DNA of 63,110 nt, counting the filler, from Reticulomyxa filosa (taxonomy: Eukaryota; Protista; Foraminifera), in assembly GCA_000512085.1 (NCBI GenBank). It is 19 parts of 19 records of this genome, joined end to end, with 100 filler letters (N's around TTAATTAATTAA, not from the genome) between each part and the next. Parts side by side here need not be neighbours in the genome. Positions count along the whole stretch, not along the records: positions 7,923 to 16,432 come from ASPP01010046.1; 18 more parts are not named here. One strand, given 5' to 3'. Below are positions 7,823-16,432 of the stretch, one piece after another. Position numbers and translations under genes: made by a program. Below the pieces are notes generated by a model, which was not told the origin of the DNA, made no database searches, and was given only the letters and a program-made list of their open reading frames with translations. Within the stretch, counting starts at the first letter, position 1, and each line of letters opens with the position of its first letter.

Positions 7823-8047
7823 NNNNNNNNNNNNNNNNNNNNNNNNNNNNNNNNNNNNNNNNNNNNTTAATTAATTAANNNNNNNNNNNNNNNNNNNNNN
7901 NNNNNNNNNNNNNNNNNNNNNNTTTTCAATTTACTGTATATGATATTAAATTAATAACTATTTATGCTATGTGATATAATCATATTTAGTAAGATATCAA
8001 TTAGTATATTATGCTTAGTATATTGATGTCTCACTATGTTGGATCTA

Positions 8048-8403
8048 CAATCGACGGCTAAAAAAAAGATCCCCTAAAATGAACAACTATGAAGATCCAT
8101 GTATTTCTAAATGAAAAATCAACATTTATTCAAAATTCTTTATTTAAATAATATCTGCGCGTCTAGAGAATCCAAAAATGTATTTGGCTTTTAATAAAAG
8201 TTTAGAAAACCATACAAAAAACATTAACGATTTTTATATGGTTTCATACACTTTTATTAAAAAACAAATATATTTTTGGATTCTCTAGATGTGTAGATAT
8301 TACTTAAATAAAGAATTTTGAATAAATGTTGATTTTCATTAGAAACACATGAATCTTCATAGTTGTTCATTTTAGGATAATCTTTTTTTTTAGCTATCGA
8401 TTG
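8048..8403. mobile_element. 356-bp palindromic MITE/foldback element flanked by TA
   Basis: TA|CAATCGACGGCTAAAAAAAAGATC...ATCTTTTTTTTTAGCTATCGATTG|TA. The arms are reverse-complementary up to a centre at 8225/8226. Confidence 0.8.
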
Positions 8404-8633
8404 TATTTAAAGAAGTGTAATTTGCTCTGGATTATATAGAATAAAGTTCGCCTTTATTATATTCGATTAAGCAAATTTTATGTGATTAAAGAAGAAGTTG
8501 GTCATGTTTGCACCTTATAAAGAATATTAAAATTTATATTATGCTTCAGTAAGTGAGGTTGATAAGTGTTTGTGGATTTTAATTTTTTGTTATTTTTACT
8601 ATTTTTTGAATTATGAAAAAAGTTCGCACACAA

Positions 8634-10571
8634 TTATTTTCTCATGCACACAACACAGCCTAAAGAAAACTCCTCTTTTCCATTGGGTGGATGTTCAACT
8701 CCCAAAGGACAAGAGGCACGACCAGGACACTTTGGAAGAGTGTCAATTGGAAGTTTGTTGAGATAAGTACCAGTTTCTTGTTTTTTGTGGCAAGTGTCGC
8801 AAAAGTGTGTAGATCCCCAGCAGAACCAAGTAGCAACACTGCAACAGAACTTGCATTGTAAGTGACATATTTTTTGCCGTGCATTTTGCAGGTGTTGGTG
8901 TCCGAGCCAGCGGCGCACGACCCACAAACCAAGTGTTCTTGTTTGTAGGCTTCCTCTTGTTCCATACCAGCCTCTTCACAGGCTTTCATGCCACCAAAGT
9001 AGGGTTGATTGCACTTGCTGCACATATAAAAAGCCAAGCGATCCATGGCAAATTTTTCAATGTTATTAAAATAAGCATCTTTGGGATCGTTGAGCCGCGG
9101 CGAGTTGTCCAGACCCTCAATTTTGAGTCTGTCGACGGCGTCTTTGGTGATTTGTTCTTTGAGTTGAAAGTGTTTGGTAGCAATATCGCGCATGGCCTCA
9201 TGTCGAATTTCGCGTTTGCACAGAGGACAGTTCAAGAAGCCAAACGTGATTCTGGCAGAGGGCCAACGTCGATCGACTTTGTTCCAGACGCACATGAAAT
9301 GGAAATGATGTCCACAGTCTAAGCGAATGGTGGGACCAGCTTTGAGAGGATCGACCCAGCAAATATTGCAAAACTCTTCGCTGTTGGTTGTGCTGTCAGC
9401 GTTTCCATTTGCACTTACACACGACTTGTCCAAACAAGGCAAGCAACGTCGTTCGCAACGAATGCCAATACAATTATGTCCACACTTGTCATGCACTCGG
9501 TCACATGACCACTTGCGCTTTTCCAGACAAGAGGCGTCGCTGCACACACTCGACAGACCAGGCCCGCTGCCACTTTCAGGTTTGGCCGTGTTGTCTGCCG
9601 TCAATGGTTTGTCGCAAAAGCGACACTTTTGCGCTTCTCGATAGTGCTTCCAGGTCTCGCACGTATACCCAATGTGATAAGGACTTGTCTTGCAACTCCC
9701 GCAAAATATAGTCGAACACTCCGAACATCGAAATCTCCATCGCGCTTTGTGCTTCTGCTCTTCCATGCCAATTGGCTTGCCGTCCAATCGATTCTCTTTG
9801 CTCGTGTGCTCCACCTCGCCTGTCTCCGTCACAAAGTAGTTTTTACATTGTGGACATTGCGTCATTGACGGGTCGCTACTTATCAAAAACTCTTTTTGCA
9901 TCTCTTCAATTTGCTTTTGATACAACTCACCCAAACCACTTTGGCGAATTAACCATTCTGGTAATTGCTCTTTGCAATCCTTCTTACTATGCTCATTTTG
10001 ATACTGTCCCACAAAACATCGGATCGCTTCTTTCTTCCAACGTTGACTCACAATCCCATTCAACAAATGCTTCTTCACACATCCCCCACAACACTTATGT
10101 CCACACGCTGTCTCGTATCCTTGCTCCTTCTTGCATACTTCACACATATATTCTGCCATCCAATCATTTGCTTCCTTCTTATCTGACTCGGTCTCATCCC
10201 AAGTCCCTCCATTTCCCATTGCCTTGTTCTTTGCTGCTCCTGTTGTTGCTGATCTTGTGCTGGTACATATCCCACACACCAAAGATTGCGGGGGGTTCAG
10301 AAACGTACAGTATTCGCACGCCCATAACTTTGACGACTCCTCACTTGCTCCCTTTGATGACGAACAAGGTCTGCCCCAAGATCACAACCAATACCTATCT
10401 CTCATTTGTTTTTCCCTACATAACTCTCTTCTCATTTCTTCGTGCGTACCTGCTTGCAAGTCCTGGCTTATTCGGCTGTTCTCCTTGTCCACATATCGCA
10501 CATTTTTCACTTGTCATAAAGTTTGGGCAATTGCAATAATTACATGACCATTCATGTGAAAATTCATTCAT
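8634..10571 (-). CDS. E3 ubiquitin ligase: ZnF-NZF-RING1-IBR fused to a MYCBP2/PHR-type RING-Cys-relay C-terminus (inferred intron 10371-10449; 1-nt frameshift at ~8856)
   Basis: WSCNYCNCPN..CAIC; WACEYCTFLN..CGIC; CEVC..CGHKCCGGC; CPQC..CSECSTIFCGSCKTSPYH; CNIC..LDCGHHFH..RITFGFLNCPLCK; YFGGMKACE; CKFCCSVATWFCWGSTHFC..HPPNGKEEFSLGCVVC. Confidence 0.9.
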
Positions 10572-10973
10572 TATTATTGATATATATTCAGATCTGTATC
10601 TAATACGGAGTGACAAATCAAAATGGAGGAAAAAGTTTTACTGAATAATTCTGGATGAGCCCTGAAATTTTTCCAAAGATTCCAGTATTTCAACAAGTTT
10701 TATTTTTTGTTAAATCATGCTAAAACAAGCACTAATTGCTCCTGAGTTACAAAATTGATGATAGAATTCCTTTAAAAAGTTTATGCAGCAAACATTATCT
10801 GTGACTAAAAAAAATGAATTTCTTCCAGTGAAGAGAAAGTGATTGACAACAACATTTTTGCACGAAAGGGATACAAGACAAAAGAAATACTGTGCACGCA
10901 ACAAAAAGAAAAGTGCCTTCAGATAGTAACGTGAAGAAGACACACTTCTGTGTGAGCTTTTTAAAAAATTGCG

Positions 10974-11898
10974 TCAAGTGGGCGTACGTGGTAACGATGA
11001 TATATCAATGGAACGTATGGAAAACTCAGCACTTTCATCCCAATTACTGACACAAGGGACAATTTGCTGAGGTAACTGAGTGAAAACAAGACCTAAGCTT
11101 TCCTCGTTGATCCAAATTTGACAGTTCTCCTGAACAAGATCAACACAAAAAGTGACAACAGACCCCCATGATGTGGGCTTACTAATGCGAAATTCTTGTT
11201 TTTGTTTGCCCGAGCTCCACGTCCAAAATGATGTCATAGCATCGGAAATGCCTAAACAATAGTCATTAGGCTGAAAGCCCAACCAACTGTTCCACCACCG
11301 CGACTTAGGTGAACCATCCATTATTTCCTTTTTTTTAATATGCTTTATTCCTTCTATTGCTCGTTTTCAAAAGTAACGCAAAAAAAAAAAAAGGGGTTAT
11401 TTCTTTTTAACATATTAAAAAAAGGGGAGATGAAGTTTAGGAACATACCATACTTACGTTAGCAGATTCAGCAAAAATCGGGTAATTGTCTTCAATTGGA
11501 TATGACACAAACCCAACATTGCTGGCATTTGAGATTTTGTGCAACACCAGTTCAAAGCATACATATTTTTGTTTGATCGATCTCTTTGTCATTGTGATGC
11601 AGTGATCTGCGATACAGCGGCCACTTCTGCCAACAATTCGAACAAGCGATGGATCGTTCAATAACGGAAAGTTCACCTTGTTGGTGAAGTTCTGCTGGAG
11701 CCATTTCCAGTTTTGTGGGTAAAAAGATGCTATCAATCCTGCCAACTCCTTTGGAAGCCACTTGCTTTTTTTGGAGGACTTAGCTAAGGCTACCCTAAAC
11801 AAGTTGTTCACCACCCACTCTACATGTTGTAAGTCATCCAAAAAACGGATCAAGTCAATTTCATATATTGTCGATTTGTTTGATGCCGCCTTAAGCAT
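10974..11898 (-). CDS. SPRY/B30.2-like domain protein with N-terminal F-box-like helical motif (intron 11328-11457)
   Basis: WGSVVTFCVDL..CQIWINEESLGLVFTQLPQQIVPCVS is a typical SPRY C-terminus; a phase-0 GT-AG intron joins the two ORFs. Confidence 0.65.
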
Positions 11899-12397
11899 CT
11901 TCTAGTTTCTTTTTACTGATTGAACCTTTGTTTAAGCCTTTTTTTAAATTAAATTCAACAGCTTTAGCCTTTTTTAATTGAAGAAATTTGAATAACAGAT
12001 CAAATTTAGATAAATTAATTTCTTCGGCTTTTGGTTGCTGAGCTTGTTTTCTTTCTTACCGTTCACAACTTCTTTTTTTAAACTACGAAAAAATTGCTTC
12101 CTTATTTTTATATCATTTTGCTTCAAAGAAATTTCACTTTTATTGTTAAGAATTTGTGGTATTTCATTTGGATTTACCATGTTGACATGAATTTAAGTTT
12201 GTTTAAGAAAACGAAAATTCAACTTACAAACGTTGCGTTAAAAAAAAATTCCCAAGGCAAATTACAATGCCATTATCTTGTTCACACAAAATATACGAAC
12301 ATAATGCAACGCAACAAAATATTTTAGCAGGTCTGCAAAATAAAAATAAAATAAAAAAGAAAATGTACAATTTGCAGACAAACAGCAATAAGCATTT

Positions 12398-14166
12398 TTA
12401 AGCTTTCCATTTCTTGGCTTCTTGGTTTCTTCCTCCAATAGTTCTTCCGGCAAAAGCTTCCCAGAACTCTGATGGCTCTTTTCCTTCCAAAACACGTGCA
12501 ATTGGAACGTTAGCAGGACGTCCTTGTGCAGCCAAGTACTCAGTTGCAAATTCCATTGCCTACACAAAAAACAATTTGGTTAACATTTATTTAACAAATA
12601 ACACGAGAAACAAAACTCTCAATTTTTCGGATTTGTTTGCACCGCTTCCAATCCAAACAAAGATCATACCACCAGCATCAACAATGAAAGCATCATCACT
12701 AACCAAAGCAGATTTGTCTAATTTTCCTTTACAAACTTCTTTGATTTGCATTTTGCCACTTGCATCGCTAACATGATGCATGCTCAAAGTTACTTTTGGT
12801 GGTTCTTTGAGTTCTTCTTCTTCTTTGATTGACTTTGGTCGTCCGCCCAATAAAGTCCAGAATTCTTCAATTAATTTATTTCCTTTATCCTTAAGTCCAT
12901 CAATGACATATTCATTGTTTACTTTTCCTAATCGTGATGCTTTAAGTCCTTGGACAATGGCGGCTGCTTTTCGTTTTTCCCAAGCACTGCTTTTTGTTCC
13001 ATTGAATTGGAAGATTGTTAATCCGTTATCCAAAACAAAACAATCACTGTCATTTAATGAATCAACTGACAATGGCACTTCGTATACTTGTACTTTTTGC
13101 TTGTAGCCCTGTTTTTGTTTTTATCATTTTACGTCCTTTGTTTTAAAAATATTTTTTAAAAACTTGGTATTTCAATAAATTTTTTTGTTTGTTTTAATTA
13201 TTAACTGTAATGTGGAGTAATCGAGGTTTGTATTCGGTTGGTTTGACACTAAAAAAAAAAAATCAAACATTGAAAAATATTTTAATAGAAAGATCTTTTT
13301 CCTAAAAAATGGCTAATTGTAACAATACAAAACTGGTTAAATCCGGATTCAACACCTCCTGACATTACGGTCATTTTTGGAAATATATCCAAAAATCTCT
13401 TTGATTCGTTACCTTTATCATATAATTAATTTGTTGCATACAAACAAACACAATTGCAATCTAAATCGCATTAATTTTGTAAATTTTTTGAAGATCAACT
13501 ATATGTATACGTCTTTTTTTTTTTAAGTTTACCTTGAACTTCTCTGTATTGAACTGGTTCATCTCCTAACAAATCATCCAATTCAACTGTTTTGTATGCT
13601 GCAGTACCAGCTTCATCTTGTGATGTTTCACCTCCCAACCAGAAAAACACCTAAACATTCACACAATCCACAGGGATTAAATTTTTATCTTTTTAAAAAC
13701 GTATACTAAAAAATTTCCCTTTCTACAAAAAACAAAATTACTTAACATCATATTCCCTTTTGCCTTCATCGTTTACCTGTATTTACAATTCAACATTAAA
13801 CCAAAAAAAACAACAAGTTTGATCATTTCTCCTTTGTCACCCAGTCTCCCTTTTTACTAACATGGACAAAATTATTCAATTTTATTTTTAAAAAATGCGT
13901 ATTTGCGTTTGGCTTTTTTAAAAAAGACATACTTTGGTGTGTAAAACGATGTAGCTGTCTCCACCGAAGAATTCACCATATTTCTCTTTTGGCCAATGTT
14001 TCACCTTAAATTTTTCAATTCTCCAGACTTGGATGCCAGCTTCTTTTCCTGCTCCTTCCCATGCTGGTTCTTTTTCTGCAGCATTTTTTTTCATCTCACG
14101 ATGTTCTTTACTGCCATAATTGGCCATGTTGCTATCTTCCAATTTCGCTTGTCCAACTTCTGCCAT
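12398..14166 (-). CDS. Gelsolin/severin/fragmin-family actin-severing protein (three repeats, multiple introns)
   Basis: [77 protein letters not shown]. Confidence 0.93.
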
Positions 14167-14570
14167 GCTTTCTTATTTTATCACTTGTCTTAAAAGCAAA
14201 AAAAAGTACAAACACGATCCTTTTTAAAAACCTTTTTTACTCCAACTTTTTTATTCAATATACGTATTTCACACATATATTTTTACATTTTCTTCTTTTC
14301 TTCGTCCGTAACTGTGGTTTTTGCAAAGTTATTTTCCGTCTGTTCTGGTTGTCGTTGCACTGAAAAGTATTTTTTAAAGATATTCATAATCTGATACAAT
14401 TTTATACACATATTATTCATAACTTTAATTACATAAAGAATAAATAAAAAATCAAAACAGAATAAGATATTGTAAAGAACCTATATTACCGGATATGAAT
14501 TATGAAAAAATTAGATCAAATTAAATAAGTAAAAATAATATAATTTAAATATTTTTAAACATTGCACATT

Positions 14571-16432
14571 TTATTCAACATGATTCATTTGATTTGAAAC
14601 AGTGTTCTTTTTGGTATCATCACTTGTGATTTGTTCAAGAGTTTCTGTTATACTCACTAATTCGTTTCTCTTTTTACTTCTGTCGGTCAAATGTTGTCTT
14701 CTTTTGTAAAAAAACATTAAATCAATTAAATGTTTGAATATTGTATTAAGCAAATATAACGATATGAAACAAAACTTAGAAAAGAGTTCTATTCTTAATC
14801 TTTCGACATGTTTTTTTTCAGATTCGATATATTCTGATTCCTTGGCGTGTAGTTTGTGCTGTAATCGTGACACTTCTTTCAGACTTTCCTTTAATTGAAT
14901 ACGCAAGTCTTTTTCACGGTGAGTCATGGAGTCTATTTGTTGTTTGTACTGATCAAGTTCTTTACAAGTTGATGCCAGTTCCATTCGCAGTTGTCCTATC
15001 TTTTTATTTAAGTAAGTAGCATTGAGAATATATTTATGCTGAAAATAGCAAAGTAAAATAAGTTAACCACACCGTGGATGCGTCTGCCTGCTTTTTATGT
15101 TTCACCAACTCTTCTCTCAGTTCTTCACATCGTCGTTGTTCGTGTTCGTACTTAGTCTTTCCATCCACATCACACAAAACTGTAAAAAAAAACCGAGTGT
15201 GTTCATATCGATAACAAACAAACAAACAAACAAATTAGACTTGTAGTAATTCATTTTCCTTTTTCAAGAATGCGATGGTACGATTTAAGGTTTCGAGTTC
15301 GTAAGTGTGATCCGCACGAAGACGTTTTAGCGAATGAGCGACTTCACCTTGCTTTGTTTTGAACTGAGACTCCAACTCCGATTTCATATGTTCTAACCTT
15401 GTTTGTTCTAATTTTATCTTTCTTTCTTCGCCTTCAATGTCATACAATGACAGTTTCAGTTTCTTTTCCAATTTTAACAATTCTTCTTTTTTTTTGGCAA
15501 TTGTTTGGAGGCGATGATTTTCCTTGTCATATGTTGTGTATGCCCTCGATACTTAAAAAAAACAAAACAAAATGTTGTCTCAAAAAAAAAAAGAGAGTTT
15601 GAACATACTTGCTCTTTCCATCTTTCTTCCAATTCACTCAGTTTTTTAGCTTCTATTAGCTTCCATCTTTTTTTTTATTTGTAGACTTTTAGTTTGAAAA
15701 ATGATGAATAAAATTATATATGTATATAATAAACTTTTCATGCCATTTGTTTTGCTGTTCGATTTTCCACAATTTCAATTCTCTAACAATTTGCTCTTCC
15801 ATCAATTTGGCCGTGGCGTAGATAGTATTACAGACAGCAATGGTACCTTCTTTTTTCTCTTCATTTGGAAAATGAGATGGAACATGCTGCAGCAGCGATT
15901 CCCTGACAGGAAGAGAGGCTGTGCTCACATTTGCATTGTGTCCATTATCCAAATGTGCAATCCTTCCAAAGTCTTCTAATGAACAGCAGATGCGAATATG
16001 TCCAATTGTGGACAATGCCAGCTTCCCATTGCATTCGACTTTGGAGTGTTTCCAATTCCCTTGTTTGATTTGATCGATTGGATAATATTCGTCCACAAAA
16101 TGCAATTGTTTATCACCATTGCAAGACAATGGAATATACAGTAATTCATTCAAATTCACCCAACACCAGCCAATTTCTCTTTAGTGTTTTTAGGCATTTC
16201 ACGTTTTCGTTATCAAAAAAAAAAAAAAAAAAAAGGCAATATTTATTTGACTAACCTGTCCTTGACAAGAGCATCTTTGTGAATAACTTCGATAAGCAAT
16301 GCTTCTTTTGTCAATTGTTGAAATAACTCCAATGGATTGCAAACAAATTCAAATGCACAAAATCCATTATCAATAACCTTTTCTTCGCATCGTTGTATCT
16401 GTATTTGTTTATTTCATTTGGAACAGTCATAT
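14571..16432 (-). CDS. C2-domain plus coiled-coil protein, CEP120-like (5' partial, multi-exon)
   Basis: C2-like strands (EVIHKD..IGWCWVNLNELL..IGHIRICCSLEDFG) are followed by EEQIVRELKLWKIEQQ..LEERWKEQ and a long coiled coil, as in the CEP120 C-terminal half. Confidence 0.5.

Follow-up and report, generated by a model that had tools for sequence, protein, structure and literature searches.

We analysed a window of 63,110 nucleotides, a stretch of 19 joined parts from the foraminiferan Reticulomyxa filosa (assembly GCA_000512085.1). Within its part at positions 7923-16432 lies RFI_13860, a minus-strand gene that runs from 10571 to 8634. We consider it likely that this locus is a real protein-coding gene that has been mis-annotated, and that it encodes a ubiquitin ligase of ~619 aa with an unusual domain order. 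From the N- to the C-terminus, the predicted product carries two NZF fingers (the second of the Thr-Phe, or TF, type), an RBR-type RING1, an IBR, a Cys-rich zinc module, a RING-H2, linker helices and a tandem-cysteine (TC) domain. The C-terminal part corresponds to the RING-Cys-relay (RCR) unit of the giant ligase MYCBP2. A preliminary description of the locus had proposed this hybrid, NZF-RING1-IBR fused to a complete MYCBP2-type relay in a compact protein of ~620 aa. The architecture was borne out by profiles, PDB alignments, AlphaFold models and VIA-align superpositions. Translation reproduced all of its coordinates, namely those of the fingers, RING1 (from 10144), the IBR (9856-9659), the RING-H2 (from 9370) and the relay cysteines.

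An MYCBP2-type relay joined to RING1-IBR

Database searches were run on the separate exon and frame pieces of the locus or on natural homologues. Residues 329-504 of the main piece matched the MYCBP2 structures 5o6c/6t7f with E 1.6e-40, and the tail piece matched with E 1.5e-15 (PDB phmmer). The C-terminal 250 residues form one continuous alignment with chain residues 8-258 of 5o6c. The relay match is not a chance event, because it reaches E 1.6e-40 against a solved unit and because 833 database proteins match the family profile at E<=1e-30.

All features of the gene described here lie on the minus strand. The RING-H2 (9218-9370, first Cys at 9370; Pfam zf-RING_2 E 2.7e-5) aligns position by position with the RING of MYCBP2 in 5o6c/6t7f. 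The TC domain, including the mediator loop, occupies 8637-9022 and is supported by the PDB phmmer matches to 5o6c (E 1.7e-40 for the first piece and 1.5e-15 for the tail piece). The upstream relay cysteine, in the mediator loop, is encoded at 8978-8980 in the motif MKACEE, and the downstream cysteine, at the esterification site, is encoded at 8820-8822 in the motif WFCWGST. In agreement with the preliminary description, they align with chain residues 143 and 195 of 5o6c, that is, with C4520 and C4572 of MYCBP2 (MYCBP2 numbering is the 5o6c chain index plus 4377). The upstream cysteine is invariant in the 20 complete family members and nearly so in 25, and the downstream cysteine is invariant in the family. 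The equivalents of C4520, C4572, the catalytic histidine H4583 and F4578 are conserved, and the zinc ligands of the TC tail are all invariant in the 20 complete relatives. The MYCBP2 residue numbers for the triad and pocket, which we take to be those of Pao et al. 2018, agree with the PDB chain sequence. At the sequence level, the RING-H2, the linker helices and a TC domain with both relay cysteines, as in an RCR module, are present.

The N-terminal half resembles RBR ligases. RING1 (C3HC4) lies at 9974-10144, with its first Cys at 10144-10142, and the IBR (C6HC) at 9659-9856, with its first Cys at 9856 and its last at 9659. All sixteen zinc ligands, eight in each domain, are invariant or nearly so in 25 family members. 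A profile of the family N-terminal region matched ARIH2 (E 3.3e-10), ARIH1 (4.4e-9), HOIP (4.5e-5) and the RING1 of RNF144A in the PDB. The IBR assignment draws on both Pfam and VIA-align. By Pfam profile, the IBR named in the preliminary description stands in the relatives, where it was called in 12 out of 24 (best E 5.2e-9), and not in the window copy, which falls below the threshold. The AlphaFold model of 9395-10162 has a mean pLDDT, the model's own confidence measure, of 92.4, and 49 of the 50 Foldseek matches listed for it are RBR ligases (row 49 is TRAF6). In VIA-align, RING1 superposes on the RING of 1wim, titled UbcM4-interacting protein 4, with a root-mean-square deviation (rmsd) of 2.4 A over 87 residues (Z 7.9), and the IBR superposes on the HOIP IBR 2ct7 with an rmsd of 1.7 A over 55 residues (Z 6.1) and on the RNF216 IBR with an rmsd of 1.7 A. 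RING1 and IBR jointly superpose on RNF216, ARIH2 and HOIL-1 with Z 8.0-8.8. The RBR arrangement of a C3HC4 RING1 followed by an IBR is therefore present. Between the two zinc knuckles of the IBR (~9730-9850) there is an insert of ~39 residues with the pattern G.DGK.LS.EA..H....RFRC, which is family-specific, conserved and helical in the model.

The module that follows the IBR is not a RING2/Rcat. This Cys-rich zinc module (9419-9625) reads CxxC..CxxxxC, then C..CxHxC.G..CxxC..C, and is shared with the PHR giants, the class of very large ligases that includes MYCBP2. Ten of its alignment columns never vary (nine hold Cys or His, one holds Gly), and a further column, also Cys, is nearly invariant. 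Folded alone in AlphaFold, it reached a pLDDT of 85.7. Against the PDB, neither Foldseek (lowest E 0.65) nor VIA (highest Z 2.4) produced a significant fold match, no Pfam family matched it, and its matches in the ESM Atlas were confined to unnamed eukaryotic clusters. At the place of the Rcat catalytic residue there is no Cys, and the consensus reads G-L. The protein lacks RING2/Rcat and, for this reason, is not an RBR ligase in the strict sense.

We considered two identities for this module and rejected both. The spacing CxxC...CxxxxC, which is like that of zinc site 1 of RING2, prompted us to consider a decayed Rcat; this is unsupported, since the catalytic position lacks a Cys, the fold matches include no Rcat, and the alignment to the ARIH1 RING2 had a negative score. 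An NF-X1-type finger was a lead from a language model alone (scores 0.87-0.88, below the mark of 0.9) and had no Pfam match.

Two RanBP2-type zinc fingers open the protein, NZF1 at 10491-10550 and NZF2 at 10265-10324, and both fit W-x-C-x2-C-x3-N-x6-C-x2-C exactly. Their Pfam scores are E 0.022 for NZF1 (Zn_ribbon_RanBP, below the curated cut-off) and E 0.02 for NZF2. The T-F...hydrophobic signature of ubiquitin binding is confined to NZF2, with T-F at positions 13-14 and Ile at position 25, the three ubiquitin-contact positions; NZF1 has N-C in place of T-F. In PDB phmmer searches, NZF2 matched the NZFs of TRABID (E 6.6e-4), ZRANB1 (8.8e-4) and NPL4 (1.2e-3), and more weakly those of HOIP and TAB2. 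The TF motif that the preliminary description had read in the second finger is thus present with its Ile, and NZF2 is predicted by its sequence features to be a ubiquitin-binding NZF of the Npl4 type.

Gene model and frame break

The RFI_13860 protein was the top database match to the locus, with 95% identity. By translation, coding exon 1 (10450-10571) begins with the ATG at 10571-10569, consists of 40 codons plus 2 bases and contains NZF1. The N-terminal residues of the GenBank protein (P0001) are identical to this exon, and the donor site is the same. The sequence then shows an intron at 10371-10449 (79 nt, GT..AG, phase 2), which has in-frame stops inside it and whose removal puts NZF2 back in frame. 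The intron is close in length to the mean of 87 bp reported for the R. filosa genome (PMC13746701), and it leaves NZF2 intact. Coding exon 2 (8634-10370) was translated in two frames, joined at a one-base frame break at 8856/8857, and ends with a TAA stop at 8636-8634.

The break falls on an AA dinucleotide (8856-8857) where a Lys codon is expected and where the locus is one base short compared with all relatives. Frame A reads ..HGKKYVTY and frame B resumes with QCKFCC... Since the foraminiferan relatives read HGKKYITYKCKFCC here, one base is missing within the Lys codon. On the MYCBP2 structure 5o6c the first piece ends, and the tail piece begins, at chain residue 182; as the two pieces meet on the same MYCBP2 residue, the coding sequence is continuous. 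The 77 codons past the break contain no stop and retain all invariant family residues. We regard the break as very probably an assembly error in the draft, which is very fragmented (N50 3.6 kb; PMC13746701). The place of the downstream relay cysteine in the product depends on the break being such an error, because its codon (8822-8820) follows the break.

If the one-base deletion were genuine, the Reticulomyxa copy would be a pseudogene, and the downstream catalytic cysteine would be lost from its product. The break is indeed present in the deposited assembly, and no reads cover the site. Set against this are the 77 open codons beyond it, whose conservation exceeds that of the remaining protein, the absence of any further lesion across 1.86 kb and the low N50 of the draft, and we judge a pseudogene to be improbable.

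The GenBank model of RFI_13860, of 555 aa, resolves the locus differently. A 196-nt intron (10254-10449) excises NZF2, and a second intron (~8777-8850) spans the frame break and drops the block with the downstream catalytic Cys. In favour of this model is its standing as the deposited annotation. Both "introns", however, are open-frame and encode motifs that are conserved in relatives, an NZF in the first case and, in the second, the block with the highest conservation in the family, and the sole purpose of the second is to bridge the frame break. We find it hardly credible that this model is correct. Both GenBank introns are false, and the database protein is a catalytically "dead" artefact. 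The frameshift and the 79-nt intron were placed in the preliminary description as we place them, which improves on a model that loses NZF2 and the downstream Cys, and our analysis corrects a database protein that is missing its catalytic cysteine.

Several observations weigh against the reading of the locus as a gene for an active relay ligase. The only public run that matches the locus gave a 343-nt contig covering 9409-9751 at ~97% identity, so that reads span neither the frame break nor the 79-nt intron, and a look for RNA runs gave none. The RanBP and IBR scores of the window copy are under the Pfam thresholds. The MYCBP2 esterification site combines a Cys-His-Glu triad with a hydrophobic pocket that accommodates the methyl group of threonine (PMC9527308), and this site is not fully reproduced: F4586 is replaced by Gln throughout the family, F4573 is Trp here, and the foraminiferan clade has His at the position of E4534 and a Glu one residue earlier. 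Elsewhere in the family, the E4534 position is mostly Glu or Asp. Judged from these residues, the relay machinery appears intact and the acceptor pocket is not identical to that of MYCBP2. Because F4586 is Gln and the triad Glu is shifted, the preference for hydroxyl groups or threonine may differ, and threonine esterification should not be assumed.

A protist family and its relation to the PHR giants

The Reticulomyxa protein is no one-off; it is one member of a large, ancient and widespread protist family. The search with the family profile covered 1.84 billion representatives. A survey of protists for proteins that combine IBR and RCR, an idea of the preliminary description, proved productive: full RING1-IBR is present in 117 of the 207 relay-bearing cluster representatives. 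Another 26 have a partial RING1-IBR, mostly in fragments truncated at the N-terminus, and 23 are giants with a B-box. Named members come from Foraminifera (Elphidium, Nonionella and Bolivina), Paulinella, Bonamia, Paramecium, Guillardia, Clastostelium, Namystynia and Anaeramoeba. The lineages with members include Rhizaria, ciliates, cryptophytes, Amoebozoa, diplonemids and metamonads, which amounts to at least six major eukaryotic lineages. Full-length single open reading frames (ORFs) occur in the transcriptome assemblies of Elphidium, Paulinella, Clastostelium and Namystynia. Since these complete ORFs span both halves of the protein, the two halves lie on one transcript in relatives, which contradicts there the possibility, raised in the preliminary description, of two halves transcribed separately.

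Compact versions of the family measure 490-800 aa, and their N-terminal additions differ: members carry NZFs, a Rad18-like CCHC finger (UBZ-like) or a C2 domain. The Rad18-like finger (C-P-x-C ... H-[VIL]-x-x-C-L), which may be a UBZ that binds ubiquitin, opens P0002, P0017, P0027, P0034, P0040, P0045 and P0066. We found no exon for such a finger within 400 bases upstream of the Reticulomyxa ATG. In two long metagenomic proteins, P0157 (1736 aa) and P0179 (1550 aa), the RING1-IBR-relay block is internal or is trailed by more sequence; in P0157 it lies at ~344-815. Both add to the range of architectures within the family.

The PHR giants align to the family profile from the Cys-rich module through the C-terminus. 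Among them are python MYCBP2 (4673 aa), one protein from a nematode and others from Acytostelium, Cantina and Platysulcus. The Cys-rich region is therefore MYCBP2-like, as the preliminary description had it. Its further statement that PHR giants have no IBR also held, as the RING1-IBR family profile found nothing significant in 16 giants. Among the proteins >1,500 aa, 2 out of 18 (P0157 and P0179) have RING1-IBR. Weak profile matches ~100 aa upstream of the Cys-rich module in the giants were considered as a vestigial IBR and proved to be a B-box (C-x2-H...C-x2-C...C-x2-C...H...H). A B-box lies at this distance in most of the giants that we read, three of which are outside the strict motif. Long PHR-like proteins with a relay unit (1,516-3,951 aa) were observed in Cantina (P0103), Platysulcus (P0100) and Acytostelium (P0153); the strict B-box pattern is matched by P0103 and P0153, and P0100 has a longer variant. 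Because these three occur in stramenopiles and dictyostelids, the PHR class is not limited to animals.

The Reticulomyxa protein and the PHR giants are homologous throughout the C-terminal ~330 residues, from the Cys-rich module through the RING-H2 and the linker helices to the TC domain, and both relay cysteines, the catalytic His and all zinc ligands are kept. The giants have 3,000-4,700 aa, compared with ~619 aa here, and the Reticulomyxa protein has NZFs and RING1-IBR instead of the RCC1-like, PHR, Myc-binding and F-box-binding regions and the B-box. Pfam found RING and RanBP-type fingers only. Some databases label relatives as MYCBP2 orthologues. The Reticulomyxa protein is not one, because it is small and lacks the RCC1-like and PHR domains and the B-box, which is restricted to the giants.

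With the Ariadne RBRs (ARIH1/HHARI and ARIH2/TRIAD1) the protein shares RING1 and IBR, by profile and by fold, including the connecting helix. Unlike them, it has no RING2/Rcat, no catalytic Cys after the IBR and no Ariadne or UBA-like domain, and it carries the conserved ~39-residue IBR insert. HOIL-1 (RBCK1) likewise combines an NZF with RING1-IBR, which superposes with Z 8.0, and its catalytic centre has been reported to form ester bonds (PMC6613137, PMC9527308). HOIL-1 uses a single Rcat cysteine, whereas the Reticulomyxa protein has an MYCBP2-type two-cysteine relay. By analogy in its NZF, RBR and ester formation, HOIL-1 is the nearest functional counterpart.

In a quick, unrooted tree of the relay unit, the giants and the RING1-IBR proteins fall on opposite sides of a branch with an SH-aLRT (Shimodaira-Hasegawa-like approximate likelihood ratio test) support of 80. 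This topology fits a single architectural switch, which could have run in either direction given an unrooted tree.

Across the searchable literature, the cysteine relay is attributed to one giant protein, MYCBP2, whose conservation is traced in reviews from C. elegans to mammals; a human E3 compendium names no other RCR ligase (PMC9120709, PMC13061254). We find the relay unit to be ancient and to occur widely among protists, where it is mostly fused to an RBR-type RING1-IBR, and this is likely to surprise a ubiquitin specialist. Our full-text literature searches found no publication on the RING1-IBR-RCR architecture or on its protist family; the preliminary description had likewise known of no characterised protein of this kind. 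The member sequences are already public, and their function is a predicted one. The compact versions of 490-800 aa should be far more amenable to expression, crystallisation and mutagenesis than a protein of 4,600 aa. The family offers a direct test of how two RINGs and a relay cooperate, and of how common ester-forming ubiquitination is outside animals.

Proposed mechanism and neighbouring genes

We propose that a charged E2~ubiquitin would dock on the RING-H2 and that ubiquitin would then form a thioester with the Cys of the mediator loop (codon 8980-8978). From there it would be relayed to the downstream Cys (codon 8822-8820) and finally handed to a nucleophilic group on the substrate; as with MYCBP2, this group is probably a hydroxyl. 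NZF2 may recruit the enzyme to ubiquitin or ubiquitin chains. RING1-IBR could provide an additional docking site for E2~ubiquitin or ubiquitin, or could regulate the relay. Relay catalysis, the chemistry of the bond and the role of RING1-IBR are all predictions, and the same applies to the ubiquitin-primed non-lysine ubiquitination and the evolutionary link between RBR and RCR that the preliminary description had suggested might follow from the architecture.

The contribution of RING1-IBR can be pictured in two ways. The RING1-IBR region of the RBR ligases HOIP, parkin and ARIH also binds allosteric ubiquitin. By this precedent, the module may be non-catalytic, with a regulatory or recognition role (allosteric ubiquitin binding, autoinhibition or substrate binding) in a protein that is purely an RCR ligase. 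The conserved, family-specific IBR insert suggests a special binding surface, and the N-terminal modules (NZF, UBZ-like and C2) vary as targeting parts would. We hold this tentatively as a possible role, noting that the sequence level offers no distinction between it and a hybrid mechanism. In the latter, RING1, alone or besides the RING-H2, would dock E2~ubiquitin in the open RBR manner and pass ubiquitin to the mediator-loop Cys, with the TC domain serving as the Rcat. The retention of eight RING1 and eight IBR zinc ligands across supergroups points in this direction, as do the superposition of RING1 and IBR on the E2~Ub-bound RBRs RNF216 (8eb0), HOIL-1 (8eaz) and ARIH2 (9sdx), the lack of an Rcat to take the ubiquitin, and the conservation of the fusion in >100 cluster representatives. 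On the other hand, the RING-H2 hardly differs at its key positions from the MYCBP2 RING, and in 6t7f the latter is enough for transfer from E2 to Cys. In addition, ~160 residues of zinc modules separate the IBR from the mediator loop. We consider the hybrid mechanism somewhat unlikely.

A broader proposal builds on the same layout. The family would bridge the two transthiolating, RING-dependent ligase classes, with RING1-IBR loading the mediator-loop Cys of a TC domain that replaces the Rcat. The layout would date back to the last eukaryotic common ancestor, and a single later replacement of RING1-IBR by a B-box plus long N-terminal regions would have given rise to the animal PHR giants. We regard this combination as speculative and unlikely to hold in full.

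Three further minus-strand features lie upstream of the relay ligase gene. The next gene (10974-11898) has two exons and is SPRY-domain-like, with a Pfam SPRY match at 10977-11321 that is below the cut-off (E 0.0028). The partners of animal MYCBP2 include the SPRY adaptors FBXO45 and SPRYD3 (PMC12664034). The adjacency of a SPRY-like gene and a relay ligase is probably a coincidence in a eukaryote. At 14571-15480 there are Glu/Lys/Leu-rich ORFs that resemble the exons of a coiled-coil protein and have no significant Pfam family; a Prominin match over this interval (E 0.002) is probably an effect of composition. Between the two, at 12587-14166, is a gelsolin/severin-type actin-binding gene that is split by short AT-rich introns, with Pfam Gelsolin matches at 12590-13078 (E 2.8e-19) and 13498-13650 (E 2.8e-7).

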